A DNA stretch of 64,000 nt from Tubulanus polymorphus (taxonomy: Eukaryota > Animalia > Nemertea). The translations under genes and the position numbers were made by a program. Numbering within the stretch: position 1 is the stretch's first letter; every line of letters begins with the position of its first letter. The stretch is from contig NC_134031.1 of the NCBI RefSeq assembly GCF_964204645.1, positions 2,480,001 to 2,544,000 on the forward strand, given 5' to 3'. Under the pieces are notes generated by a model, which saw nothing but the letters and a program-made list of their open reading frames with translations, had not been told where the DNA came from and ran no database searches. Of this stretch, positions 36,303-56,034 are shown piece after piece.

Positions 36303-37872
36303 CTTCATCTTGATTGTGTATGTTTCGTGTTAAGAGTTTGTTTGTTATTCTGGGAGTGTTGCTGACTGTGGTTAGAATCTTCTTTCCCTTTGATGTCGAT
36401 CTTACATTGCATCAGTCTCGAGAGGAAGCCAGTAGATGACACCCCCAGATGAGAGGGGTCTACAATACCAAATGAATATACGATGATAAATGTCCCTACA
36501 AACCGAACAAGAAATTGTCCATGCGTTGAGCAGTGAAAAGATGCGCACATGTACCAGCAGGTAATGTTGGTACGCGTTGAGGATATTTACTTTGCCTCAG
36601 TGCAGGAGGTGTTCCGCACAGCGATTGATAATTGGTGGATAACACAACGTAGATATCAAGAGGCTGTCATATATGTCACCATCGCGTTTGCCAAACTGAT
36701 ATAAAGCGAGCGAGTTTTGCTTGTGATGGAATTCCTGTCTGGACAAACTGCTTAGACTGAAATCCAATTGGTTATAGTGGCAGCCGGTCGGCATTGATAC
36801 CGAGAAAGAATAATTTAAATTTGATGCTAGGATAATTTTGAGGATTAGAGGTCATTAGAATATTGGACTCTATAGTTATTCGTAAAGGACGTGTACCCGA
36901 CGCTTGCGGGTTTGACTTTACTTAAAAACTGTTTTCGTCGGTAAATAGCATTACGTGATTAAGGAGTTACGCACCCGCTGTAATCAAACCGTATTTCTAC
37001 AAACTGCGAAAAATTTCGCCGATTTTCAGGCATTAGACGGTAAGTTTACGGGACTTAATATCAATTTATGCATATTTCAGCATCAGCTTATTACAACTGA
37101 TAATACACAAGTGAGATATTCGGTAGCAAAGAGTGGTGATATGAGTAAATTGCAAATATCTGATAGTAGTCACTTGCCAGGGCCCAGGGGCGCTTTTTGC
37201 CAATCGGCACAGAGTGTTCAAATCAAAAAAGATCTTACTCATTATCCTGTGTATCTTAGGATGTCATCTAATGTGTATGTTAGCTTTGTGTTTGGCCCTC
37301 TGATGTAAGCAGCCCCTGCACGAGTATTATCTAGGATGAGGAGTATATTTCACTAGTAGGATTCGAACCCACGACAACTCGTCGCTCGGTTGTGAGTCAA
37401 ACATCTTATTTACCAAGCCACTGAGACGAGACAAAGTTGGTAAATGTTAAATCTTATGTAAACGAGTCGTAAACAAAAGGGCAGCTTTTTCAACTGTAAT
37501 ATTTTCAAATTAGGTCTGATGGGCAAAAGGGCGAGGGTTAAAGAGATTTAATATTTTAAAAGCTGTAAGCTGTAAGTAAGTTGTGGGTCTAAAATCCGGT
37601 CCAGTTGTAGAATGCTACACTTAGTATGGAGGTCAAGTGTTTGAATCCTGATATTTGTGATATTTCTCAGAATTTTCTAAGTCCATTAAAATTGTGCAAC
37701 GAGTCAGTTATAGGTTCTAACATCATCTACCCTGTAAGATGTTAAATGGCAGATATCTTATTTCTAATCTTTTTCTTTTCTCCTCTGTTCACTGCAGCAC
37801 AGGTTGAGGTTATATTATATCGTCAGCTGTTCGCACTGTTTTTTAATACCTGCTGCTGACCATAGAGACAAA

Positions 37873-40800
37873 ATGACCGATCTACCAATGTGTAAGTATC
37901 TTATAATAACAATGAAACTATTCTCATAAAACCTCTAAGTTTTCACTATGATTTATGATGGTTAATCACAAACATCATATAACAGACCATGAATCCTGCT
38001 CTGACTGCCACGGATTCATGTTACTGCATCGACCGAATTGACCGCGAGACCCGAGGCATTCGGAGAATAATGTTTCAATTCTGTCTGATAAGAAGAAGTT
38101 ATCTTATCATGTTATTTTTGTTTCTCCGATGATGAAGTTTAGTCAAAACACTCGGAATAAACCGTTTAATCATCAACTGTGGGTTTTGCTCATTAACTCT
38201 GAAATTCTGATATTAATCAATACCAGTCAAAATTAAGCTTAAAATTCTGTATTTTTTGGGGATTGAAAGCCTTGCTACTTCACAGCCACGATGTCACACT
38301 TAACAATGAATGCAGCCCGTTTAAAATTCCAGCATTTGGAGAACAGTGTCCATGAATCTTGTATTGTTTGTGTATTGCGTTTCAGATTCGGTTCAAGAAG
38401 TTCCGATCTCGAACGGTTTGATATCGCAGATAATCAACACGAGTCAACTCGATTCACAGGCGAATAAATGTCCGTGGATATTGACTAAAGCTGAAATAGT
38501 ACAACACGCTCAATTTGACTGCGAATATGAAGGTTTGTACTGAGATACAGAAACGGTTGTGATGTTAAATTACCCGGCCTGTCGGAAGCAAAATGGCAGA
38601 ATTTTCCACGCAAACTCAGATGATGTTAGACGAAACCCCAAAATAAAAAGAAAAACTATCTGGTAGTTTAACGTTTCAACTCAATTCTATGAGCCATTTT
38701 CAAAACAGTTTTTGAAAATGGCTCATAGAATTGAGTTGAAACGTTAAACTACCAGATAGTTTTTCTTTTTATTGTGGGTTTTTGTCTACTATTGATATTG
38801 GACAGCCAATTGTCTATGGAAACCAATCAGATGATGTTCATTGTCTGAAACAAAAATGTTTGCAGTGGCCTTTATATATATAGGTAGTCTGCTATACCTA
38901 ATATCTATTTCAACTTGACTTAAGAGCACATCAGGTGCCTGCCTAGCTCAGTCTGTTTTGGTGGTAAATACCTGATAGAAGTCTTATTAGGACCAGAAAG
39001 CACTGGCAGTGGACCTTTAAACATTGATTTTCAATCCATTCTTCACCTTATTGAAGGATATCCAAAAAGTCTTCATTGAAAGGGGATAAAAAGAGAAAAT
39101 TGAAAAGTTTAACAATATGTTACCATGCCTACACACCAAACTTCCAGTGCTTTCTGGTCCTAATACGACTTTTATTAGGTAAGTACCAACACAGACTGAG
39201 CTAGGCAGGCACCTGATGTGCTCTCAAGTCGAGTTGAAATAGACATTAGGAACGACTGATCGTGGATATTGACCCTGGATGAGGTTTTCTCATTTTAATT
39301 CTAGAAAAGAAGGCCGAAACGCTGGGATTTTCGCAGGCGAATTCAAATTGTGATTTGTCGAATAGATACGGTTTTTGCACCGAGTCGGACGACGAAATCA
39401 TTAAACAGATGTTGCTGAACGGACTGATGATTTCCAACGTAAAATACAACACGCTCGGGTTCAGTAAATGCGGCTCTTACGTGACGAGATTCATCGACGT
39501 CTGTTTGAAGTATTATCACTTCCAGAATCCGAGCGAAGATGACGTACGCGTCGTTATATTCAAGGTAATTTATCAAAACTCGCGCGTTAATATCGTCGTG
39601 GTTCCTCCTCACTGGGAAATCGGATAAAAACGGAAATATTTGCGAATTCGATAGATTTTCCTTGATTATCCGGGAAATGTTTGGGAAAGTAGTTCAGTGT
39701 AGTTTATGGATGTCATATGTTTGTAAACCTGAACGCAAATTTCTTGAATATCGCTAGTCAAAAATGTTGATATCGCCCGTAGAATGATGGTATTATCTGT
39801 TTTGCGAATACCCCGTTACTAGTTGGGGAAGTTTAAAAATCATCTATGAAATACTTTGAATTACAAAACTGTGGGAACGGTGTAGTATGTTGGATTTTAT
39901 TCCTATTTTATTCAAGAGATGCTTTATTAATTTTTACCTGCTGATTAATTGTTTTTCAGTATTTTCTCGGGAAGGTTACGAAATGCGTTCCGAAAGCGTC
40001 ATATGCTACTGAAATAATCGAACCGACGCAAGGATTCGACGCCCACCAGTCGGTCATTGAACCAACTCCCATCGAACCTATTCATCAGCAGTTCGAAAAA
40101 TCACAGGTAGGCTTATATCAGTTATACTCTTCAGCAATCTCATGTGGCTGGGTGAGTACTCTGACTCCTGGGTGAGTACTCTGACTCCTGGGTGAGTACT
40201 CTGACTCCTGGGTGAGTACTTTGATTCCTGGGTGAGTTCTCTGACTCCTCGGTGAGGTCTCTGACTTCTGGGCGAGGTCTCTGACTCCTGGGCGAGGTCT
40301 CTGACTCTTGGGCGAGGTCTTTGGTTCCTGAGTGAGGTCTCTGACTCCTGGGCGAGGTCTTTGGCTCCTGGGTGAGGTCTTTGACTCCTGGGTGAGTTCT
40401 TTGACTGGTTAGTTATATCACAAGCCCCAGTTCCAGCAGTTGAAATGAGTTCATTTTTTCAATATCTCAACTTTGCTTAACCATGTAATTTGAGGGATAA
40501 TAGAATATTATTATTTCAATGTTACTATTATTATTAACATATATAATTTTGTTCAATATTTCGTAGGTGTATTTGTATGAATTCGACTCACTCCGTGGTA
40601 TTCCGGTAATGCGTCCACGTCAGTGTATACCAGTAGCTGTTTTGTCGTACACGAAAGACAAAATGTTGGAAGCGGAAATTTACCGCACGCGAGAATGCGC
40701 GAAGATGTCGTCGAGCGACCTTGAAGACTCCGGGTCGCAGTGTTCGAACAACAGCGCGTCAGAGAGTCTGAAAGGCAACGATCGATTCGCGAATAACCCG

Positions 40801-41706
40801 CAGTTGAAGGCGATCGTCGACGCCATCAACTCGCGCCCGATAAACAGCGCGCCGATTCTACCGCGTCGTAAACGAGTCGGCGCGATACCGACGGGTGGCG
40901 CCGGCGGTGTCGATAACTGCGTCTCCGTGTCGGAGCGGTTAGCCAACAATCCGCAGCTGAAAGCGATCGTCGATCAGATTAATTCGCGTCCAGCGTTGGA
41001 GAACGCTCCGATGTTACCTCCGCGTAACGGACGCGTGCCGCGCTCTAACGGTAAAGCGACGTATTACAATCAAACGCCGGCGGTTACGGCGTCCAGTCCG
41101 AATTACGGTTACAACGACGCGTATTACGACTACAACGACCAGTATTACGAGTACGTCTGCGATTCGGCAGCGCCCTCTACGTCGTCTTCGTCGTCATCGA
41201 CCGCGTTTTACCAGAACAATCCGTGGCAGACGCAAGAACCGTCTGTCGGTCGTATCGGTGGTGGCGCCACCGGTAGCGTTAACGCCCAGCGAGGCGCTAA
41301 CAATCTACAACACCATCGAGGAGGCAGCATGAACGCAGTGAGTCCGCGTCGTGGCAGTAACGGCTACCACTACAACCCCGGTAATCAAAAACAAATGCCG
41401 CCATCTGGTGGTGGCGCGTCGTCGTCAAAAAATTTCTGGGATAGTTACGAGTACGGCAGCGGGGCGCCTGCTCCGTCACGTGTCACCAATCAATATCATC
41501 AGCAACAAACAGCGCCGCTGCAGCGTCACAATGAAAACGGCTCGGGGGGCGCTGTTAATTTCGGTTACCACAGTTACAACAATGACAGTTATTACAACGT
41601 ACAGCCTCAGAATCATCGCGGCGCCATTACCGGAGGCAACGGAGTCGCGAAGAGTTATCAGGGAGGACGTGGATTGTCTTTTAGAGGACGAGGAAGAGGT
41701 AGGTGA
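37873..41706 (+). CDS. TEX15/TASOR-family DUF3715 (pseudo-PARP) protein, ~570 aa, with a low-complexity RG-tailed C-terminus
   Basis: Exons 37873-37891, 38386-38532, 39305-39564, 39960-40106, 40567-41706 (1713 nt, GT-AG, frame-consistent). Motifs NGL...TLG...GSYVTRFIDVCLKY, VVIFKYFLGKVTK, EPTQGFDAHQS and SQVYLYEF...RPRQCIPVAVLSY are colinear with the DUF3715 domain of TEX15/TASOR as recalled. The first exon is the least certain. Confidence 0.82.
38633..38785. repeat. Near-perfect palindrome (~65-bp arms), Penelope-terminus-like
   Basis: AAAAAGAAAAACTATCTGG...CCATTTTCAAAA / TTTTGAAAATGG...CCAGATAGTTTTTCTTTTT. Degenerate ribozyme-like core TTGAAAATGGCTCA...TGAGTTGAAACGTT. A related remnant lies at about 23512-23570. 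Confidence 0.85.
38897..39250. mobile_element. Fold-back MITE sharing termini with the 7119-7670 element
   Basis: CCTAATATCTATTTCAACT...AGTTGAAATAGACATTAGG, ~110-bp inverted arms. Internal ACCATGCCTAC is shared with the 7119 element. Confidence 0.8.
40148..40406 (+). repeat. 20-bp minisatellite, 13 copies, in intron 4 of the DUF3715 gene
   Basis: Unit CTGGGTGAGTACTCTGACTC and variants. Confidence 0.95.
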
Positions 41707-42915
41707 AACAGCAGCGGCTAGGTGACTTACGAGCTCAGTTCCACGCTCAGGTTTTATTCCATATTCCTCATGCTTCAGGACAGATAAACAGTACCGATTC
41801 TACAGTAATTGGGATATGAAAGTGATGCTGACGCTTCCATCAAAATTTGAAATTTTCTCCTGTAAAACTACTTGGAAACTAATTATACCTAGGAATGATT
41901 GATCTGTAGCGACCCTGTCTTATTAGAACGGCGCTAAAAGAAGCAAAGCTTGCCATCGATTCATTAGTGAAATTCTCGTTTTATCATTTCAGGGAGAGGC
42001 AATGGTTTCCAGCATTTCCATTGAACTGTCTGTATTGAACTCACATCGGTGAATACGTACCCCGCTAAACTCGTGATGATTCTAATTCTCTCATTCTGTT
42101 CAAACTGCTGTAGTTTTAATAAACGATTCATTGGTTCTTGATGTGCCATAAAATACAGTGAAAGCACTCTGCTCGCCTGGTCGCGATCCGTTGAGGCGCG
42201 GTCATTCCCGACAATCCGGGAACGATCGATTTGATGAAAAAACTGGGAGTTTCAAAGCACGGCATCGATATGTATACATTGTAACTGATGTTAGCTCGTG
42301 GCTTTTACAATACTCAGTATTTTATATTTGAATTTATGTATCATCATTATTGTTATTATTATTATAATTATCATCAGCATTATTATCTGATTATCATCTT
42401 ATTATAATTATCTTATTATTATTATGATTATTATTATTATTATTATTGATTACTCTGTATTAAGAAACATCGAATAATGTTTTACCGACCTGTTATAGCT
42501 ACACTGTCCCGATGCGTATAGTGTTTTTCCTGTTTTCATTTTGAGGGGCCATTATGCAAGCTCCCTCCATATACCTTCCCCTTATGTATGCAATATCTGC
42601 TGATTTGCATACTGGAAGGTGAGCTCCTTCGCTGCGGATTTGTACAGTAGAAGTCGCTTCATTCGGATCAGCTAAATTTACAAATTGATCTACCAGGTAA
42701 TTCTGATATTGGTTTTAAGCTCCACCTATATATAATGATATGTAATTATAGATGTCGAGTCGTGATTTCTGATAAACTGGATGAATTTCGTTGGTACCAA
42801 TGATCCTAACTATGCACGTTCTTCTGTACAGATCAGTGCCCTCTAAATGGAGTGGAACTTCTGTCACTGCAACGTTTTGATAGAGTGGAAACTCTGTCAC
42901 TGCAGATTTCAGGTA

Positions 42916-43080
42916 GGGATCATTCATTTATTACATACGCATTAGGGAAGGGGGGAGGGGTCAGTGCAATTGCATACTGTAATGCTAAATGTATATGAAA
43001 AAATGGCCGATTCTGCGTACAGAGGGGAAGAGGGGTTGAAAAATTCAAATTTTATGCGTACGTAATAAACGAATGATCCC
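42916..43080. mobile_element. MITE
   Basis: TIRs GGGATCATTCATTTATTACATACGCA...TGCGTACGTAATAAACGAATGATCCC. Confidence 0.75.
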
Positions 43081-43384
43081 GTACTTGAAAAACCTATGAA
43101 TAATTGAATAGCCAGTTGATTCGACCGACCAAGAAAAATCATGTTTACATGTACGTAGACTAATGCTTTGTGACAATTGTATTGTATTTCGTATTTAGAC
43201 CACAATATTTTCAGCATAGTTATTTGCTACTATTATTCCATGTTAGTTATTATTATTACTATTATTATTGTATTATCTTCAATTTTTTTGCAATTTCGGT
43301 ATTTTTGAAATGAAATATGATGCAGCCCTGACCCTCTGCGCCCCCTCGAGTGATTTGATGCCTCGTTATGACTGTCAAAACTTC

Positions 43385-43706
43385 ACAGTGAATTGTCTTT
43401 AGGGATGGCTCCTGGCTGAAGGTTGACCACACTCAATGAAACAGTGAATTGTCTGTACGGGTGGCTCCGGGCTGAAGGTTGACCACACTCAATGAAACGG
43501 TGAATTGTCTGTAGGGGTGGCTCCGGGCTGAAGGTTGACCCCACTCAATGAAACAGCGAATTGTCTGTAGGGGTGGCTCCAGGCTGTAGGTTGATCACAC
43601 TTGCGGTGAATGTGAATTGTCTGTTGGGGTGGCTCCGGGCTGTAGGGTGATCACACTTGCGGTGAATGTGAATTGTTTCTTCGGGTGGCTCCTGGCTGTA
43701 GGTTGA
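43385..43706. repeat. 56-bp minisatellite, about 6 copies
   Basis: G(T/C)GAATTGT recurs at 43388, 43444, 43500, 43556, 43612 and 43668. Confidence 0.92.
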
Positions 43707-45337: not shown

Positions 45338-48300
45338 TTAAGACGGTGGGAGTTTATCCTGTAGTGTAGGTCTACGTTTCGGGGCTTTCCCAGTCGGGTC
45401 GACAGATTGAATTCTCGTGACTCCTCGAATCTCTGCGTATTTAAGCCGGAATGACCTATACGCGTATATATACGGCCACATGGCTGACTTGAGTGGTACG
45501 ACGAAAAGACATATCCAATGAACGACGAATTGCGATAAATTGAGCTCCATCACATTTCCTAATTTCATAATTATAACGATCATCGTACTCAAGGCATTCA
45601 GCACTATTATACTCTTGATTCGCAGTGTATACTTCATATCTATAAGCTGTTCTGTAGTCATCGTTTCTTTCGTCAGAGTGGCGTGTTTAGCGTACATACC
45701 CAGGATTAGCGACATGATGCAAAGAGCGATAAACGACATCGAATCGATGGCGATCTCGATTCCGTGAAACGTCTCCCAACCTGCCACGAAATTCCCGAAT
45801 AAAGTAGTCGACAGGCAAAGGCCATTGGTTTCGTACATAGCTTTCCCGAGATCGGGCAAAAACAATACAGGTATCAGGCAAATAATCATCCCGTACAACC
45901 AGGGAAATATCAAAGAGAGTCGAAAGAAGTGCTTGTTTTCAAAAACGGATGATTTGAAAAATGATAGAATTTCAATGACGCGTTCAGCAGACATGAATAG
46001 AATTGCAACGAGAGAAATTTGATAACTCAACGACCAAAGAATACCAACAGCCTTACAAACACCTGACTTCAGCAACCATAAAGCCCATTTGTGATACTCT
46101 CCTGAAGTTGTCTTACTCGTAAAAGCCACCAATACGATATATATAGCCATCGGTAATTCGGATAAAGCTACATTCGAGACAAGAATCGACGTGGCAAAAT
46201 TTCGCTCGGTACACAGCTTCCAAATCGGTATGACGACATTGCCTACTAGTGACATCACCCCGACTAGCCATACTACGTTTTGAATAAAATCATCAGTCAA
46301 CAGATCGCCGCAGGTTGAGAATTCGTCTATATTCGGCGTACAACGACGTATCGACGACTGCAGACAACAATAACTGAAATGTGACGTAATCAGTGTGGAC
46401 AACGAGTCGATTTGAAAAGCTCTAGGATCGACATCGACCGGCAAGTTCCGGGAAATATCTAATTCTACCAAACTATTCATATCAGAGAATGCCAAACCAT
46501 CGATTCTATTTAACCGGTTTTTCTTCAGGGTTAACTTTTGCAAGGCGACAAGTCCCCGAAAAGAAAAATCTTCGATAACCGAAATGGCAAAATAAGAAAG
46601 GTCGAGACGTTTTAGCGAAACTGCACCGATGAAAGCAAGGGGTTCAATGGTGGTTATTCGGTTTCCGCGAAGCTCAAGACGGCGCAGATTCGTCAGACCC
46701 CTGAAAGCGTTTCGTGGTAAAATCGAGACAAAGTTGAACGCCAGGTTGAGCTCGTAAAGACTCCCCATCGTAGAGAACGCAGATGTCGGAAGAGAATTAA
46801 TATGGTTGTAAGACAGATCGAGACGTGCCAATGAATAATACTCTGAAAATGTATCGTTAGTCAGCAATAATCTGTTATAAGAGAATACCAGACCTCGTAA
46901 ATCTTTAACCATTTTTGACGGTAGTTCGGTTAAATTTCTACCCAAACAATCGACAAACAGTCCAAATTGACGACACGTTTCAACTTGACCATCGGCAACT
47001 GAGCAATACTTTTCGTCGTCGCCGTTTTGTTTGCAGTCTACTTTTCCATCGCAGACGTGTTTCTGCGATAGACAAAACGAAGAGTTCTTACATCGAAAAC
47101 TGCCGGCACAAGATCGTCTGGGACATTCTAGTTCATCTTCACCTGACGGACAATCGGAAACACCGTCACAAACTCTTCTTTCGTGAATACAATACGACAA
47201 ATGACATTTGAACATGTGCGGACACGTGAAATTGCGACAGTTCTTCAAGTGTTCGTTTCGACGACAAACGGGACCGATCATGTTGGGATTTTCGTAAATG
47301 CAAGCGTCGTATCTGGCAAAACAATTATGATTCGTTTCAAGGTCACACCTGACGTCATTTCTCGCCTCGCAATAGCGCCGGAAGTTCGTTCTAACACGGA
47401 ATTTAGTTATCTCGTTGTATTCAATTCTTCTCAGACGATTGTAACGGACATTTTCCTGTTCCAGAACGTTGTGAATAATGTCTTCGTCTTCCCCGTGCTC
47501 GCAGTCGGCTACCAGATCCAGGAAATTCCTCTTGTAGATACATTCTCCCGTGAAACACTGAAACCGGCCCTTACAGATATCGTCCGTCCAACTGTCAGTA
47601 CAATCCTCATCGGAGCCGTCCCGACAATGCTCGATCCAGTCACATCGTTTCGCGATCTGAATACATTCACCAGATCGACAATGGAACTTTCCGCTTTCGC
47701 ATTTCGGATAAGTGCAGTACGCCTCATCCGAACCATCTTCGCAATCACGTACGTGATCGCAGTGTAGAGATATAGGGATGCATCCTCTTCCGTCATCGCA
47801 AGTGAACGTCGACTGATCGCAAATACCGCAGTTCAGTTCATCTATACCGCCGTTACAGTCGACGCTTCCGTCGCAGACTCGTCCGATTGATATACACGTG
47901 CCATCTAAACACCGGAATTGCGTCACGTTGTTACAAACGTATCGATTCGATATCGGTGGAACTTCGCAGATAACGTTTATCACGCGAGGATAATTAACGG
48001 CCGGCTTTAAATATCCGGGTAATTCTAGATACGGCTGTTGACTGCAAGAAGTTTGACGTAGAACCCATTTGTACGGTTTCATGAGGTATTCTTGCCAACT
48101 CAACGATTCGGCATTTTTCTCGATGTAGTTACACACAGTCTCGTTCTCGTCCGCTTTCACCCAAATTGCTCCGTATTCCGACCTGTGACGCCAGATCTGC
48201 AGATACTGATTGAGGAAATCCATGTCATTTTCGGTAATGTTCGCTACTGTCGCGTTATCAGCCTCAGTGCTACAATACCATGTAGAAAGAGAATACCACA

Positions 48301-50153
48301 GTTCCCGCGTGAGCAATCTACGCGAACTCAATAACTGGATACATCTTCCATTGAACTGCGTCCAGTTTTGTGGACAGTCGATCATATCAAATCTTTCAGC
48401 ATCGAAACCAAATTCTGTTTTGTCCGCTTGATTTTTAATTCGTTCTACACGTTGCGTCGTCCGATTGGCTGATGTCGTCTGATTGGCTGATGTCGTCTGA
48501 TTGGCTGATGTCGTCTGATTGACCCGTTCTTCAGCTGCGTCAGTTCTAGTTGCGGTCGGTTTGATGTTTTTCTCGCACACATGCGCTGGCGCAACAAACT
48601 GCGAACTGCACGCTGTAGCGAAAGACCTCCATGCCATCCGAGGATTTAACGGTGATATCACTGCGCAATGAAATGATTCTTGTTGGAAAGGTTGAACGAC
48701 TCGGTCGTTCAGTTTTTGTTGTGTTGAGATCATATAACCGATGATGTCAAAATCGGACCAGGACGGATCCAGCACTGGTGTTCCGTCTATCCATTCGTGT
48801 CTTTTGGTCTGGAATTCGCAGATATCGTAATGTTAGACCTTATTTATATCAACCATTCAATTATAACATTTATTTTCGAAACCTTACCTCCTGGTTATAA
48901 ACGATGCCTACAAATATAACAGTTGCTTGGTCTCCGGTCTTGGAGTTCGGGTAGAGTTCATCCCTCCATTCGACCAAGAACAAGTATTTGAGGACGTTCT
49001 CGACTTCTTCAGTTTTAAACGTTAGTAACCTACCACCCTCTTGTTCGCAATGCTTGCTCGCATTCAACCACGTGTCATTTGCGTGCTACAAATAACGATT
49101 CGTTCGTTAAATATTGTTAAGAAAATACCAAAATAATCTAAGAGCCCCTCCATGAGCTCGAATGCGGCGGTGGCGACAGTTTGTCGATGCGTCGCCTCTT
49201 AGATTTTCAAGAAAGTTCCGTACATTTTCATACTTTTCTAAAGATAGAGATGTAATTATTCCACAGTTATTGAACTTACCTTAAATAATTTGTAGCACGT
49301 GTTTTTGTATCTATGATAATCGTAATCGTCTCCGCATAGCGATGAAGGTCTAATTAATGCTTTCGGTTTATCGTAGGATTTAACCGCGTATCTCAACGTT
49401 GTCTTTGACAGAGGAAAGAGCGGATTCTTCTCCGGCGATAGTTGTATATGCAAAGGCGATAAATCGAATGTTTTCACTCCGTACTGAGGGATGTTTGATG
49501 CCATTTTACTGAGCGTGCCTGTAACCCCCAACTCAAGCATGTATAACGAGGTGTTTTTCGTCCCGTATTGCAATAGCGCGAATGTCTTCAATATCAATTG
49601 GTTGATGTTATGTATGAAGTCGATTTCGAAGTAGCATCGCCTCGTATCGGGGCAGAAGCTAGAGTTAGGGTGGCGCATTAACGTCAAAGAGCTGGATTTC
49701 TTCTCCGATATCACTACAGTACCGCACTCCTCTATGAAACGCGTCTCATTGACAGGGATTAGACCGCTAAAATTCATCACCTTAAACGAATAGAAATAAA
49801 TAGAAAATTGTTTCACGCGGCGTTTGTATGGTGGCCGATTTAGGCCATACTAAAAAATTCTTGTACGGCCAAACGCGCGACACAAACAATTCTCGACATG
49901 AACAAAATGTTTTGATTTCTCGCGCGATGAAACGTGAAAAAGTGTATATATGCTGGTGTTTGGCCGTAGAGAAGTTTTTCAAGTGGCCCGAATCGGCTAC
50001 GATACGTTTGGCACATTATCGAAGTCTGACCAATGTTCAGAATGGAGCAAGCTCAGCTCATCGGTTTACCTGTCTAGAATAGTCGCATAGCTCGTGCGTT
50101 GATACCCCGAACAACAGTGGAGAAATCAGTGAGATGCTAAACAGCAGCAGCAT
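45338..50153 (-). CDS. GRL101-like GPCR copy A (signal peptide, CUB-like region, two C-type-lectin-like domains, LDLa repeats, LRRs, 7TM), ~1417 aa
   Basis: Exons 50153-50070, 49780-49280, 49085-48888, 48808-45338, all phase 0. LDLa motifs (C..G.CI....CD...DC.DGSDE), LxxLxLxxN repeats, hinge HFSYCC...C...DEFSTC.DLL and seven hydrophobic helices. The CUB-like call is tentative. Confidence 0.9.
49826..50004. mobile_element. MITE in the first coding intron of GPCR copy A
   Basis: Imperfect inverted arms GTATGGTGGCCGATTTAGGCCA...TGGCCCGAATCGGCTACGATAC. Confidence 0.6.
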
Positions 50154-50930: not shown

Positions 50931-53900
50931 TTAAGACGGTGGGAGTTTATCCTGTAGTGTAGTTCTACGTTTCGGGGCTTTCCCAGTCGGGTCGACCGAT
51001 TGAATTCTCGTGACTCCTCGAATCTCTGCGTATTTAAGCCGGAATGACCTATACGCGTATATATACGGCCACATGGCTGACTTGAGTGGTACGACGAAAA
51101 GACATATCCAATGAACGACGAATTGCGATAGATTGAGCTCCATCACATTTCCTAATTTCATAATTATAACGATCATCGTACTCAAGGCATTCAGCACTAT
51201 TATACTCTTGATTCGCAGTGTATACTTCATATCTATAAGCTGTTCTGTAGTCATCGTTTCTTTCGTCAGAGTGGCGTGTTTAGCGTACATACCCAGGATT
51301 AGCGACATGATACAAAGAGCGATAAACGACATCAAATCGATGGCGATCTCGATTCCGTGAAACGTCTCCCAACCTGCCACGAAATTCCCGAATAAAGTAG
51401 TCGACAGGCAAAGGCCATTGGTTTCGTACATAGCTTTCCCGAGATCGGGCAAAATCAATACAGGTATCAGGCAAATAATCGCCCCGTACAACCACGGAAC
51501 TATCAAAGAGAGTCGAAAGAAGTGCTTGTTTTCAAAAACGGATGATTTGAAAAATGATAGAATTTCAATGACGCGTTCAGCAGACATGAATAGAATTGCA
51601 ATGAGAGAAATTTGACAACTCAACGACCAAAGAATACCAACAGTCTTACAAACACCTGACTTCAGCAACCATAAAGCCCATTTGTGATACTCTCCCGAAG
51701 TTGTCTTGCTCGTAAAAGCCACCAATACGATATAGATAGCCATCGGTAATTCGGATAAAGCTACATTCGAGACAAGAATCGACGTGGCAAAATTTCGCTC
51801 GGTACACAGCTTCCAAATCGGTATGACGACATTGCCTACTAGTGACATCACCCCGACTAGCCATACTACGTTTTGAATGAAATCATCAGTCAACAGATCG
51901 CTGCAGGTTGAGAATTCGTCTATATTCGGCGTACAACGGCGTATCGACGACTGCAGACAACAATAACTGAAATGTGACGTAATCAGTGTGGACAACGAGT
52001 CGATTTGAAAAGCTCTAGGATCGACATCGACCGGCAAGTTCCGGGAAATGTCTAATTCTACCAAACTATTCATATCAGAGAATGCCAAACCATTGATTCT
52101 ATTTAACAGGTTTTTCTTCAGAGTTAACTTTTGCAAGGCGACAAGTCCCCGAAAAGAAAAATCTTCGATAACCGAAATGGCAAAATAAGAAAGGTCGAGA
52201 CGTTTTAGCGAAACTGCACCGATGAAAGCAAGGGGTTCAATGGTGGTGATTCGGTTTCCACGAAGCTCAAGACGGCGCAGATTCGTCAGACCCCTGAAAG
52301 CGTTTCGTGGTAAAATCGAGACAAAGTTGAACGCCAGGTTGAGCTCGTAAAGACTCCCCATCGAAGAGAACGCAGATGTCGGAAGAGAAGTAATATAGTT
52401 GTAAGACAGATCGAGACGTGCCAATGAATAATACTCTGAAAATGTATCGTTAGTCAGCAATAATCTGTTATAAGAGAATACCAGACTTCGTAAATCTTTA
52501 ACCATTTTTGACGGTAGTTCGGTTAAATTTCTACCCAAACAATCGACAAACAGTCCAAATTGACGACACGTTTCAACTTGACCATCGGCAACTGAGCAAT
52601 ACTTTTCGTCGTCGCCGTTTTGTTTGCAGTCTACTTTTCCATCGCAGACGTGTTTCTGCGATAGACAAAACGAAGAGTTCTTACATCGAAAACTGCCGGC
52701 ACAAGATCGTCTGGGACATTCTAGTTCATCTTCACCTGACGGACAATCGGAAACACCGTCACAAACTCTTCTTTCGTGAATACAATACGACAAATGACAT
52801 TTGAACATATGCGGACACGTGAAATTGCGACAGTTCTTCAAGTGTTCGTTTCGACGACAAACGGGACCGATCATGTTGGGATTTTCGTAAATGCAAGCGT
52901 CGTATCTGGCAAAACAATTATGATTCGTTTCAAGGTCACACCTGACGTCATTTCTCGCCTCGCAATAGCGCCGGAAGTTCGTTCTTATGCGCTTCCTCCT
53001 GCTATCGTGAACTTCAATTCTCCTTGATTTCATATAAACAAATTTTGCTTCGTCTTCCATATCGTAGAATGAGTCATCGTCTTCCCCGTGCTCGCAGTCA
53101 GCTACCAGATCCTGAACGTTTTCCTGAAAGATGCATTTGCCACTGTAACACCGAAACCGATCCTTACAGATGTCGTCCGTCCAGCTGTCAGTACAATCCT
53201 CATCGGAGCCGTCCCGACAATGCTCGATCCAGTCACATCGTTTCGCAATCTGAATACATTCACCAGATCGACAATGGAACTCTCCGCTTTTGCATTTCGG
53301 ATAAGTGCAGTACGCCTCATCCGAACCATCTTCGCAATCACGTACGTGATCGCAGTGTAGAGATATAGGGATACATCCTCTTCCGTCATCGCAAGTGAAC
53401 GTCGACTGATCGCAAATACCGCAGTTCAGTTCATCTATACCGCCGTTACAGTCGACGCTTCCGTCGCAGACTCGTCCGATTGATATACACGTGCCATCTA
53501 AACACCGGAATTGCGTCACGTTGTTACAAACGTATCGATTCGATATCGGTGGAACTTCGCAGAGAACGTTTATCACGCGAGGATAATTAACGGCCGGATT
53601 CTGAAATCCGGGTAATTCTAGATACGGCTGTTGACTACAAGAAGTTTGACGTAGAACCCATTTGTACGGTTTCATGAGGTATTCTTGCCAACTCAACGAT
53701 TCGGCATTTTTCTCGATGTAGTTACACACAGTCTCGTTCTCGTCCGCTTTCACCCAAATTGCTCCGTATTCCGACCTGTGACGCCAGATCTGCAGATACT
53801 GATTGATGAAATCCATGTCATTTTCGGTAATGTTTGCCGCGGTTGAATTCTCATACTCGCCTTTGCAGTACCTCGTAGCAAGGTCATAAGACAATTCCCG

Positions 53901-56034
53901 TTTAAGCAGCCGACTAGAAGCCAACAACTGGATACATTTTCCATTGAGCTGCAACCAGTTTTGTGGACAGTCGGTCATATCAAATCTGTCGGCGTCGAAA
54001 CCAAATTCAGTTTTGTCCGTTTGATTTTTGCTCTGTTTTAGTGTCGTCTGATTGATTGATGTCGTCTGATTGGCCAGTTCTTCGACGTCGATATCAGTTC
54101 TGATTTTTTTCTCGCACACATGCCCTGGCGCATCGAACTCCGCACTGCAAGCTGTAGCCATTGAGTTCCATTCACTAAGAGGATTGTTTGGTGTCATCAC
54201 TGTGCAATGAAATAATTCTTGTTGGAATGGTTGCATGATTCCGGGATTGATCAAATGCTTCATTTGGACTGTGGTGAGGAACGCGTTTCTTTCGTCTTTA
54301 AACCAAGACGGATCGAGCACGGGAGTTCCGTCCAGCCATTCGTGCCTTCTATGCTGAAAATGATAGTTTGTAATATAGCAACAAACCCCGATATTCATTT
54401 TGAAGCATCTAGAATTGTAACGGTTTCTTATGGTACTGGAGGACATTCCTTTGCAATATCATCTAATTTCATTAGTTTGTGTGAAATGATTCTATCTACT
54501 AGATAAAATCTGTCCACGATAAGAAACGAAACGAACGTCAGACAAACATGGACTTTTGAATACTAAAACCGTTATTTCATACTTTATGCGATGGAATTGA
54601 TACCCAGCCTCACCTTCAAGTTATAAACGATGCCTACAAATATAGCAGTTGCTTGGTCTCCGGTCTTGGAGTTCGGGTAGAGTTCATCCCTCCATTCGAC
54701 CAAGAACAAGTATTTGAGAACGTTCTCGACGTCTTCAGTTTTAAACGTTAGTAACCTACCACCCTCTTGTTCGCAATGTTTGCTCGCATTCAACCACGTA
54801 TCCTTTTCGTACTGTAGTATAGAGACATTGAGTGAAAACATTTTCAGAAATAACATAGACAATATGAATAACATTGATAGAGATAAGTAAAGGACATTCA
54901 GCAAAAACATATGTCTAAACACCGGCTAACCTTGAATAATTTATAGCACGTGTCTTTATATCTATAGTATTCGTCATCTCCACATTGCGATGAAGGTCGA
55001 ATCAATCCTCTCGGTTTATCAAATGATTTCACCGCGTATCTTAACGTTATCTGCGCTTGTTTAGTAACTACGGAGCCCATAATCGGATACAGATCAATCA
55101 GCAATGGTGAAAGGTCAAACGTTTTCCATCCGTATTGAGGAATATTTGATGCCACTCCTAATCCGTAACTGCCCGGCTCGTAGTTAAACAGGGTTGTTCC
55201 GTTTCGCCCGTATTGTAATAAGCGGAATATGACCGTCACATAGTTGGCGTTATGTATGAAGTCGATTTCGAAGTAGCATCGCCTCGTATCCGGGCAGAAA
55301 CTAGAATTCGGGTGATGTTTTAACGTCACAATACTGGATTTTCTCTCGGACAGTACTATAGTACCGCACTTTTCGATATAGAATGTCTCCACGATTGGAC
55401 TTGGGCCGTTGAAGTTCATTACCTAACACATAAAACAAATTGATAAATGACTAAACCAACCACCACTAATTTGGTTATCGACCCTTATTTGAGTTATTAA
55501 GATGTCCTATAGACAATAAGATAAAATCCCACTATTTACAGATTAAAAGAATTTAAAAACCAGAATTTATTTATTAAATCTAAAATATTTAAAAGACACG
55601 ACGTTTCGATCTCACCCTAGAGATCATCACCTGACGATGATCTCTAGGGTGAGATCGAAACGTCGTGTCTTTTAAATATTTTAGATTTAATAAATAATTC
55701 TGGTTTTTAAATTCTTTTAATCTGTAAATAGTGGGATTTTATCTTATTATCCGTTCACCACGTTTGAGTGTGGTCATCGTTCTATAGACAATATTGTGCA
55801 GCATACGTATCTTGCAAAATTGAAATGGTTTTGCATGATGTATTGATTGTTTCTTTCATTTTACTCAATTTTTCAAATGAATATTAAGCAAAGCATATTT
55901 CCTAACGCCACGCCTTTCTGTTCATATACGTATTTGGTAAGAATAATTTTCCCTACCTGTTTTGAATAATCGCATTCGAAAGCGGAAGTCGTCCCGAGAA
56001 AGAATGCTACGGTTATCAACAAAGCGGCGCCCAT
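50931..56034 (-). CDS. GRL101-like GPCR copy B (tandem paralog of copy A), ~1396 aa
   Basis: Exons 56034-55957 (signal peptide MGAALLITVAFFLGTTSA), 55422-54931, 54811-54614, 54353-50931. Same architecture and intron positions as copy A. Confidence 0.9.
55507..55793. mobile_element. Penelope-like retroelement terminal fragment with an inverted duplication and a 12-bp TSD
   Basis: Arms 55515-55628 and 55636-55748 are near-perfect reverse complements. CTATAGACAATA is directly repeated at 55507 and 55782. Confidence 0.8.
55628..55667 (+). ncRNA. Minimal type I hammerhead ribozyme motif
   Basis: CAC-CTGACGA-T-GATCTC/tagggt/GAGATC-GAAAC-GTC-GTG: intact core, 6-bp stem II, palindromic ACGT stem III, GUC triplet, 3-bp stem I. 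Confidence 0.65.

Follow-up and report, generated by a model that had tools for sequence, protein, structure and literature searches.

Whether the DUF3715 pseudo-PARP domain can stand as a small protein of its own, and what such a protein would do, is the question raised by a locus of the nemertean Tubulanus polymorphus. It lies in a window of 64,000 nucleotides on contig NC_134031.1, where positions 37873-42024 of the forward strand hold LOC141908812, a transcribed and spliced gene with six coding exons that encodes 578 amino acids (Table 1). Both the identity and the architecture of this gene are near certain. Exons 1-5 were read from the sequence and searched one at a time, and later steps used the public Tubulanus protein P0001, whose sequence is consistent with the translated exons.

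Transcript evidence comes from run X2, which carries no RNA-library label; we infer its RNA nature from its spliced contigs. These contigs extend over the coding region, beginning with the start-codon exon and reaching a 3' UTR that runs to at least position 42249. The junctions between exons 1 and 2, 3 and 4, 4 and 5, and 5 and 6 are each present in them, which, for four of the gene's five junctions, answers the check proposed in the original prediction. The junction between exons 2 and 3 is based on the public gene model and the reading frame, and no listed X2 contig bridges it. Additionally, X2 contig record 9 carries 31 further letters upstream of position 37800, and an AG acceptor lies at 37796-37797; an additional non-coding exon upstream of 37800 is likely.

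The same contigs revise the 3' end of the gene. The original prediction joined five exons in frame from the ATG at 37873, all of which stand, and closed the frame at a TGA (41704-41706) with the ending ...GRGRGR. A splice donor at 41698|41699 lies eight bases upstream of that stop, and in the spliced X2 contigs position 41698 is joined to 41993 with GT..AG ends, so that the transcript passes the TGA. A sixth exon, missed in that reading, therefore encodes the C-terminus, ...GRGNGFQHFH (last nine codons). The frame had also been proposed for a check on neutral evolution, and the coding differences between sequenced samples argue against it: over only eight sites, all fall at third codon positions and seven are synonymous, the eighth changing E to D. 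All three polymorphisms in the tail are synonymous.

Table 1. Features of LOC141908812 by position in the window, with the evidence for each.
Feature	Position	Strand	Evidence
5' UTR portion of first coding exon	37800..37872	+	X2 contig record 9 spans 37800-37891
Coding exon 1, aa 1-6, phase 1, donor GTAAGT	37873..37891	+	ATG 37873; junction 37891|38386 in X2; matches P0001
Coding exon 2, aa 7-55, start of pseudo-PARP domain	38386..38532	+	X2 record 9 covers it exactly
Folded pseudo-PARP domain and C-terminal helix, aa 7-241, three introns inside	38386..40716	+	Pfam, 6TL1, AlphaFold, Foldseek
Coding exon 3, aa 56-142, DUF3715 core	39305..39564	+	PF12509 match; junction 39564|39960 in X2
Coding exon 4, aa 143-191	39960..40106	+	both junctions in X2 record 10
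Coding exon 5, aa 192-568 plus one base: domain end, two helix motifs, low-complexity tail	40567..41698	+	X2 record 10; 100% match to P0001
Family motif copy 1, aa 268-279, NPQLKAIVDAIN	40795..40830	+	predicted helix 269-279, block pLDDT ~84
Family motif copy 2, aa 319-330, NPQLKAIVDQIN	40948..40983	+	predicted helix 320-330, block pLDDT ~80
Disordered G/S/N/Y/Q-rich tail, aa 342-578, intron 5 inside	41017..42021	+	pLDDT <50 over nearly all of 342-568
RG tract RGRGRGRG, aa 564-571, split by intron 5 (41699-41992)	41683..42000	+	sequence; not conserved in orthologues
Coding exon 6, aa 569-578 and TGA 42022-42024	41993..42024	+	X2 junction 41698|41993

The N-terminal part of the protein is a DUF3715 domain by sequence and by predicted structure. 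Pfam PF12509 matches residues 72-213 at E 3.6e-17, spanning profile positions 11-150 of 150 with a score of 63.2 bits, above the curated cut-off of 28.5, and exon 3 on its own matches profile positions 10-78 (E 9.2e-5). The TASOR pseudo-PARP structure, PDB 6TL1, is also matched by sequence (E 5e-8). An AlphaFold model of the domain (pLDDT 94.2, pTM 0.90), whose first strand covers residues 8-12, finds the same structure as its best match in Foldseek (E 4e-17; TM 0.81 by target length), followed by PARP4, PARP1 and PARP13. These results bear out the DUF3715 and PARP-fold assignment, which had been made from four short motif strings; all four occur in P0001, one of them across the junction of exons 3 and 4.

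Family-invariant residues are kept in the LOC141908812 protein, and its domain is presumably non-catalytic. In the sequence alignment, Cys80 falls on TASOR L184, which occupies the NAD-binding His position, and Tyr114 falls on TASOR Y217, with residue roles taken from TASOR work (PMC7532188). An active mono-ADP-ribosyltransferase would agree with the PARP fold and with the conserved Y114 and E196, which sit in PARP-like sequence contexts. Such an enzyme is nevertheless hardly credible: the NAD-binding His appears replaced by Cys here and by Leu, Val, Thr or Tyr elsewhere in the family, and the closest solved structure, that of TASOR, has no NAD+ pocket (PMC7532188). The equivalent of TASOR Tyr305, a residue essential for TASOR silencing, is Phe in the Tubulanus protein and ranges over F, Y, L, M, I and T in the family.

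Beyond this domain, little else in the protein is folded. A Pfam scan of P0001 returns DUF3715 as the sole domain, with no SPOC, PIN or TEX15 domain (the last searched up to E 1), and neither Pfam nor AlphaFold reveals a chromodomain or other chromatin-linking module. In the full-length AlphaFold model there is one folded domain (residues 7-241), then two short helices, with the remainder disordered and no folded domain beyond residue 241. The picture of a compact, stand-alone DUF3715 protein without SPOC thus holds. The two helices carry a motif, NPxL(K/R/Q)x(I/V)(I/V/L)xx(I/L)N, that lies C-terminal to DUF3715 in one or two copies in six species of the family and that aligns across orthologues; it had gone unremarked in the first reading of the sequence. 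By regular expression, NPxL..IV..IN occurs among 191 DUF3715 proteins only in P0001-P0006 and P0151; the clade also takes in proteins without it, those of Macrostomum and Brachionus and the long one of Lingula. An ESM Atlas search with the linker (residues 226-345) gave no usable match. A weak Pfam 'XPC-binding' match on motif copy 2 (E 0.11-0.24) was set aside as chance or a generic resemblance between NP-capped helices.

The rest of the protein is a tail rich in a few residue types, in line with the N/Q/Y/G/S-rich, RG-bearing remainder described at the outset. Residues 346-578 contain 15% G, 12% S, 11% N, 9% Y and 8% Q, and the tail holds an RGG motif in addition to the RGRGRGRG tract. Its sequence is not conserved across the family. 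The RG tract was not found in the orthologues of Owenia, Lingula, Helobdella, Macrostomum and Brachionus, while in the Lineus orthologue it is shrunk to scattered RG/GR dipeptides; it is specific to Tubulanus. Since most orthologues are without it, the tract cannot be the family's conserved recruitment device. FUS-like proteins use such low-complexity composition for self-association and RNA binding. The tail also resembles periphilin and FET-type regions in its Tyr/Gly/Ser/Asn/Arg richness, a likeness of composition only and not of sequence homology, and in HUSH's periphilin this composition serves self-association and RNA binding (PMC7532188, discussion). Read by eye, the last residues of several orthologues form basic stretches resembling nuclear localisation signals.

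LOC141908812 is the nemertean orthologue in a spiralian family of compact DUF3715 proteins. Neither exon 5 nor residues 1-240 drew anything but P0001 itself in word-index searches. An exhaustive HMMER search of a 1.8-billion-sequence library placed its nearest relatives among proteins of Owenia, Lingula, Helobdella, Lineus and Macrostomum, and Brachionus adds a further compact relative, giving six other spiralian species with proteins of 432-661 amino acids. These species and Tubulanus represent Annelida, Nemertea, Brachiopoda, Platyhelminthes and Rotifera. In the members, DUF3715 sits at the very N-terminus as the one fold, ahead of a long, fast-evolving low-complexity tail. In the DUF3715 tree, the compact clade has nine rows and a support of 97/97, with Tubulanus and Lineus as sisters (90/83); its named members include no cnidarian. 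Moreover, two intron positions, K|Y(F) at exon 3 and Q|V at exon 5, are common to all three genes checked (Tubulanus, Lineus and Owenia). A tblastx comparison of the Lineus flanks with the window gave no synteny match. Because compact orthologues exist in six other species and transcript contigs cover the coding region, the size of 578 amino acids is not an annotation accident. The family is conserved in worms and brachiopods and was previously undescribed; in a literature search on DUF3715 and spiralian taxa, no paper mentioning DUF3715 was among the top 15 matches.

Comparative analysis sets this family apart from both well-known DUF3715 proteins, which act in transposon silencing. TASOR (FAM208A), a component of HUSH (PDB 6TL1), belongs to the same Pfam family, is the best structural match, and likewise has an N-terminal domain with a degenerate His position; an intron following the conserved ...SQ|V position occurs in the Tubulanus TASOR-like gene as well. 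Unlike TASOR, which measures 1,670 amino acids in human (PMC7619638) and 3,444 in the Tubulanus paralogue, the 578-residue compact protein lacks SPOC, DomI and DomII, as well as the PIN domain of that paralogue. It also differs in having Phe for the essential Tyr305 and a helix motif and low-complexity tail of its own. TASOR is defined by the N-terminal combination DUF3715-SPOC-DomI (PMC10578480). TEX15, a vertebrate factor of piRNA-directed methylation, shares the N-terminal DUF3715 and supplies the best vertebrate matches in the library search, but it is about five times longer and carries TEX15 domains, which are vertebrate-specific (PMC10578480) and absent from the compact protein. The long molluscan DUF3715 proteins (Dreissena, Mytilus, Lottia and Sinanodonta; 1,433-3,981 amino acids) have DUF3715 as sole Pfam domain, as here, yet they group in a clade of their own (93/95), exceed the compact protein three- to sevenfold in length and lack NPxL..IV..IN.

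The view that the domain stands closer to TEX15 than to TASOR finds weak support. Profile scores lean that way, with 131.6 bits for vertebrate TEX15 against 112.8 for the TASOR clade (and 150.6 for the long molluscan group). In the tree, however, LOC141908812 falls outside both the TASOR clade (100/99) and the vertebrate TEX15 clade (100/96), and neither a TASOR-sister (p-AU 0.34) nor a TEX15-sister position (p-AU 0.50) is rejected. The compact family forms its own DUF3715 lineage, separate from those of TASOR and vertebrate TEX15. The genome was also checked for a full-length TASOR, as had been proposed, and it holds a long TASOR-like gene on another contig, which encodes P0108, a protein of 3,444 amino acids with DUF3715, TASOR alpha/beta and PIN (Pfam matches PF23314, 45.5 bits, and PF24630, 90.3 bits). 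The presence of this separate long gene shows that LOC141908812 is not a fragment of a canonical one. A third DUF3715-like locus lies on contig C4; its pieces have no Pfam match, its 1,320-residue open frame found no protein, and its gene was left out of the tree.

As to function, the DUF3715 domain of TASOR is essential for HUSH silencing and dispensable for complex assembly, and it can be replaced by that of TEX15 (PMC7532188, PMC10578480). Since the domain is needed in this way and can be exchanged, the compact protein may best be taken as a non-enzymatic adaptor through which transposons or other transcripts would be repressed in an RNA-directed manner. Its effector surface would be the pseudo-PARP domain, the conserved helices would dock a partner, and association with RNA or condensates would come from the Tyr/Gly/Ser/Asn-rich tail, which in nemerteans bears RG and RGG motifs. 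Taken as a whole, with gene, family and adaptor role together, this explanation has about an even chance of being right. The silencing role as such, hypothesised from the domain alone, is tentative and on balance doubtful, and the unconserved tail sequence, the lineage-specific RG tract, the Phe at the Tyr305 position and the lack of a chromatin-linking module count against it. Bolder still, the family might form an autonomous minimal RNA-directed silencing effector that joins the TASOR pseudo-PARP surface and a periphilin-like low-complexity region in one polypeptide, with the NPxL..IV..IN helices docking chromatin or RNA-decay machinery; this version is distinctly unlikely.

Other readings draw on the same features. 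The tail composition, which resembles that of RNA-granule proteins, the absence of a chromatin-reading module, the weak ssRNA binding of the TASOR domain (PMC7532188) and the place of PARP13/ZAP, with its inactive PARP domain, near the top of the structural matches, behind TASOR, would all suit a ZAP-like post-transcriptional factor. Its inactive PARP fold, joined to a FUS-like Tyr/Gly/Ser tail with RGG motifs, would bind RNA in cytoplasmic granules and influence RNA stability or antiviral defence instead of chromatin silencing. This is a modest possibility, set against a sequence and fold that are clearly of DUF3715 and not ZAP type, the absence of zinc fingers or other RNA-binding folds, and the basic ends, nuclear-signal-like to the eye, of several orthologues. 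The original prediction proposed possible recruitment to germ granules or the piRNA machinery through the RG tail; symmetrically dimethylated repeats, read by Tudor domains as in PIWI and Sm proteins, would bring the protein to germ granules or PIWI complexes. A germline piRNA factor of this kind would accord with the RGRGRGRG tract and RGG motif and the somewhat higher TEX15 profile score, and TEX15, itself a DUF3715 protein, associates with MIWI2 (PMC7385494). It is improbable all the same: five orthologues lack the tract, which leaves the proposed route unsupported, and it is the helix motif, not RG, that is conserved beyond the domain. RG and RGG tracts are common in RNA-binding low-complexity proteins generally.

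A regulatory decoy has similarly little probability. In this case the compact protein, as a paralogue reduced to the domain, would tune silencing by contending with the long TASOR-like protein, or with the product of the third DUF3715 gene, for the binding partner of the pseudo-PARP domain, which would agree with the co-occurrence of these loci in one genome and with the lack of any assembly domains in the compact protein. Against it, the Tyr305 equivalent departs from the family consensus, and the family is old, spanning five phyla, with a conserved motif of its own, which speaks more for a separate partner than for simple competition.

These findings bear on a domain whose molecular function was called unclear in a 2025 review (PMC7619638). 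TASOR and TEX15 are very large and multidomain, so DUF3715 is hard to isolate functionally in them. The compact family offers a conserved natural protein with little beyond DUF3715, a short putative docking motif and a disordered tail, and it occurs where RNAi or genome editing is feasible, in Macrostomum and in annelids related to Owenia. This could make the binding and function of DUF3715 more directly testable, and if the autonomous-effector version were true, the family would be the simplest natural system for finding a DUF3715 binding partner. In kind, the family is no surprise. A published tree already contains invertebrate DUF3715 proteins without SPOC (PMC10578480), and cnidarian 'truncated Tex15 homologs' likewise have DUF3715 as their sole recognisable domain (bioRxiv 10.64898/2026.09.07.749791); the accessible part of that preprint defines them by profile matches and describes no motif, size class or clade. 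Collectively, spiralians keep at least three DUF3715 lineages, and not just TASOR-like ones.

The compact gene LOC141908812, annotated at NCBI as uncharacterised, lies on assembly contig C7 of the nemertean Tubulanus polymorphus and encodes the DUF3715 protein P0001. A word-index search with its fifth exon, E5, returns a single match, P0001 itself (578 aa, 100% identity), which carries a precomputed assignment to PF12509. The original prediction had assembled five exons at this locus; E1 to E5 are rebuilt from the sequence with compatible splice phases (1, 1, 0, 0), and every motif string it quoted is present in P0001. Its 3' end was wrong, since the TGA taken as the end of coding is preceded, eight bases earlier, by a splice donor that a contig of the public run X2 joins to a sixth exon. 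Its estimate of about 570 aa gives way to the 578 residues of P0001, with the C-terminus ...GRGNGFQHFH.

Spliced contigs from X2 show that the gene is transcribed and that its processing follows the public model. One of them joins 37891 to 38386, while another, of 1,788 letters, carries the joints 39564|39960, 40106|40567 and 41698|41993 and continues to 42249, with GT..AG ends at all four joints. No contig bridging the E2-E3 junction was found among the X2 contigs listed. The first contig also has 31 further letters beyond its upstream end at 37800, adjoined by an AG acceptor at 37796-37797, which makes at least one additional 5' non-coding exon likely, either outside 37300-37800 or too short to place. 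A truncated N-terminus is ruled out, because the orthologues share the start position and the fold has its first strand as early as residues 8-12. Downstream, the locus is bounded by the next gene, on the opposite strand.

Coding exons of the compact gene and other features of the window (window positions)
Feature	Position	Strand	Description
E1	37873-37891	+	ATG; donor GTAAGT; read from sequence
E2	38386-38532	+	read from sequence
MITE-like element, intron 2	38627-38788		162-bp near-perfect hairpin; 79-nt arms, 96% complementary
MITE-like element, intron 2	38897-39250		354 bp; ends in long inverted repeats with 66-nt arms (94%) followed by 52-nt arms (87%)
E3	39305-39564	+	read from sequence
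E4	39960-40106	+	read from sequence
2-kb bin	40001-42000		most of E5; GC 0.50 vs about 0.36-0.40 in neighbouring bins
Tandem array, intron 4	40148-40406		20-bp unit repeated about 13 times; 88% matches
E5	start 40567; donor at 41698|41699	+	donor AG|GTAGGT; sequence and X2 contig
E6	41993-42024	+	last nine codons of P0001
Repeat	42816-43200		just 3' of the 3' UTR; word depth >10,000 in public run X1
Tandem array	43385-43706		56-bp unit, 5.8 copies; beyond the high-depth repeat
Open frame	45338-48775	-	1,145 aa
Open frame	50931-54446	-	1,171 aa

The DUF3715 assignment holds in both sequence and structure searches. Whole P0001 matches Pfam DUF3715 over residues 72-213 (63.2 bits against a cut-off of 28.5, E 3.6e-17); among the exons searched singly, E3 matches by itself (E 9.2e-5, profile positions 10-78) and the shorter ones give no Pfam match. 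Sequence search also aligns residues 40-221 with the TASOR pseudo-PARP crystal structure 6TL1 (E 5.3e-8). An AlphaFold model of residues 1-240, built from the 75-row alignment A2, reaches a pLDDT of 94.2 and a pTM of 0.90, and its top Foldseek match in the PDB is again 6TL1 (E 4e-17, TM 0.81 by target length). P0001 retains all invariant or near-invariant residues of the family: G107, G112, D120, G146, P164, D169, H171, P208, R209, P213 and A215.

Exhaustive HMMER searching with residues 1-240 across 1.84 billion representatives yields 202 matches with E up to 1e-3, and the nearest relatives are all short, with DUF3715 at the extreme N-terminus. They comprise P0002 (432 aa, from an unnamed transcript assembly), P0003 (661 aa, Owenia fusiformis), P0004 (622 aa, Lingula anatina), P0005 (532 aa, Helobdella robusta), P0006 and P0151 (539 and 559 aa, Lineus longissimus), P0008 (488 aa, Macrostomum lignano) and P0113 (612 aa, Brachionus calyciflorus), each with DUF3715 as its sole Pfam domain. 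In a careful maximum-likelihood tree of 75 domain sequences, the compact proteins fall into one clade (support 97/97) together with a 1,965-aa Lingula protein on a long branch, and Tubulanus and Lineus pair within it (90/83). This clade falls outside those of TASOR/TASOR2 (100/99), vertebrate TEX15 (100/96) and the long molluscan proteins (93/95). Two intron positions within the domain, K|Y(F) and Q|V, are common to the Tubulanus, Lineus and Owenia genes.

The domain had been described as closer to TEX15 than to TASOR, which holds for similarity. Against profiles built from the tree clades, P0001 scores 131.6 bits with vertebrate TEX15, 112.8 with TASOR and 150.6 with the long molluscan group, and the TEX15 profile outscores that of TASOR for seven of the nine compact proteins. 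The AU test rejects neither a compact plus TEX15 grouping (p 0.50) nor a compact plus TASOR grouping (p 0.34), so "closer to TEX15" is a statement of similarity only.

The same genome also contains a canonical long TASOR-like gene. A six-frame Pfam scan locates a second DUF3715 locus on contig C3 at about 901,000-924,400 on the minus strand (loci L001 and L003-L005), where tblastn places P0108, a protein of 3,444 aa encoded by many exons over more than 23 kb. Alongside DUF3715, P0108 carries the TASOR alpha/beta and PIN domains, and the tree places it within the TASOR clade. A scan with the A2 profile reveals a third, DUF3715-like locus, G000:C4:2505765-2507012 on the minus strand (L009 and L010), where three exons match the profile colinearly (E 2e-8, 1.6e-7 and 0.05) ahead of an open frame of 1,320 aa; its pieces have no match in Pfam, and a search of a large protein collection turned up no protein that matches it. 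Given these separate loci, the compact gene is an additional gene, and its being a remnant of the genome's only DUF3715 copy is ruled out.

Beyond the domain, P0001 contains no SPOC, PIN, TEX15 or any further domain in a Pfam search. Full-length AlphaFold modelling with alignment A3 predicts a single folded unit spanning residues 7-241, followed by two short helices (269-279 and 320-330, block pLDDT about 80-84) and, from residue 342 to the C-terminus, disorder. Alignment of full-length orthologues uncovers a 12-residue motif that had gone unnoticed, NPxL(K/R/Q)x(I/V)(I/V/L)xx(I/L)N, present in one or two copies after the domain; in Tubulanus its two copies coincide exactly with the two predicted helices. 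A regular-expression search of the 191 proteins fetched confines it to P0001-P0006 and P0151. The tails of the compact orthologues do not align; that of P0001 is composed of G (15%), S (12%), N (11%), Y (9%), A (8%), Q (8%) and R (6%), among other residues, and includes 21 tyrosines.

UniProt names the orthologues "TASOR pseudo-PARP domain-containing protein", invertebrate sequences without SPOC-DomI already appear in a published DUF3715 tree (PMC10578480), and a 2026 preprint names cnidarian DUF3715-only proteins "truncated Tex15" (bioRxiv 10.64898/2026.09.07.749791). The literature searched holds no prior description of the compact spiralian clade, the helix motif or the coexistence with a long TASOR-like gene. 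The molecular function of DUF3715 is still termed unclear (PMC7619638), and the main value of the compact family is as a minimal natural handle on this unexplained domain.

In TASOR, the pseudo-PARP domain is required for silencing and dispensable for assembly of the complex; it binds ssRNA weakly (PMC7532188), and the TEX15 domain can substitute for it (PMC10578480). On the strength of these published properties, the compact protein would most likely be a non-enzymatic adaptor in RNA-directed repression. DUF3715 would provide the effector surface, the conserved helices may dock a partner, and the Tyr/Gly/Ser/Asn-rich tail could associate with RNA or condensates. After 6TL1, Foldseek returns the catalytic domains of PARP4, PARP1, ZAP/PARP13, tankyrase and PARP12; a ZAP-like cytoplasmic RNA factor is conceivable and rather unlikely, and an active transferase is scarcely credible. 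Under the residue numbering of PMC7532188 and the P0001/6TL1 alignment, Cys80 corresponds to TASOR L184, the position of the NAD-binding His in active PARPs, while Tyr114, E196 and Phe197 correspond to Y217, E304 and the functionally essential Tyr305; the last position varies within the compact family (F, Y, L, M, I, T). From sequence, we infer a "pseudo" state for this domain.

Two further roles are improbable. The compact protein could act as a decoy for the long DUF3715 paralogues encoded in the genome, or it could be a germ-granule factor recruited through Tudor domains, as originally proposed from its RG tail. That tail does hold one RGG and an RGRGRGRG tract at 564-571; the tract is exclusive to Tubulanus, with scattered RG/GR dipeptides in Lineus and few or none in other species.

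Eight coding differences separate the window from contigs of four runs, which represent at most two samples from one study. All eight fall at third codon positions, seven being synonymous and one Glu to Asp, and three lie in the disordered tail. As a rough estimate, neutrality would leave about one in four random changes synonymous, which would make the pattern improbable, of the order of 1 in 1,000. Small as the sample is, the pattern is in keeping with how deeply the compact family is conserved.

Several features of the surroundings accompany these results. Summed contig word depth runs in the thousands over the MITE-like part of intron 2, so both elements appear highly repeated in the genome. 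E5 is rich in CG dinucleotides by eye. Farther downstream, the two uninterrupted open frames are arranged in tandem, are highly similar and look like a recent tandem duplication. In the first, five LDL-receptor class A repeats occur together with a leucine-rich-repeat block and a rhodopsin-type 7TM region, as in type C LGR or relaxin-receptor-like GPCRs.
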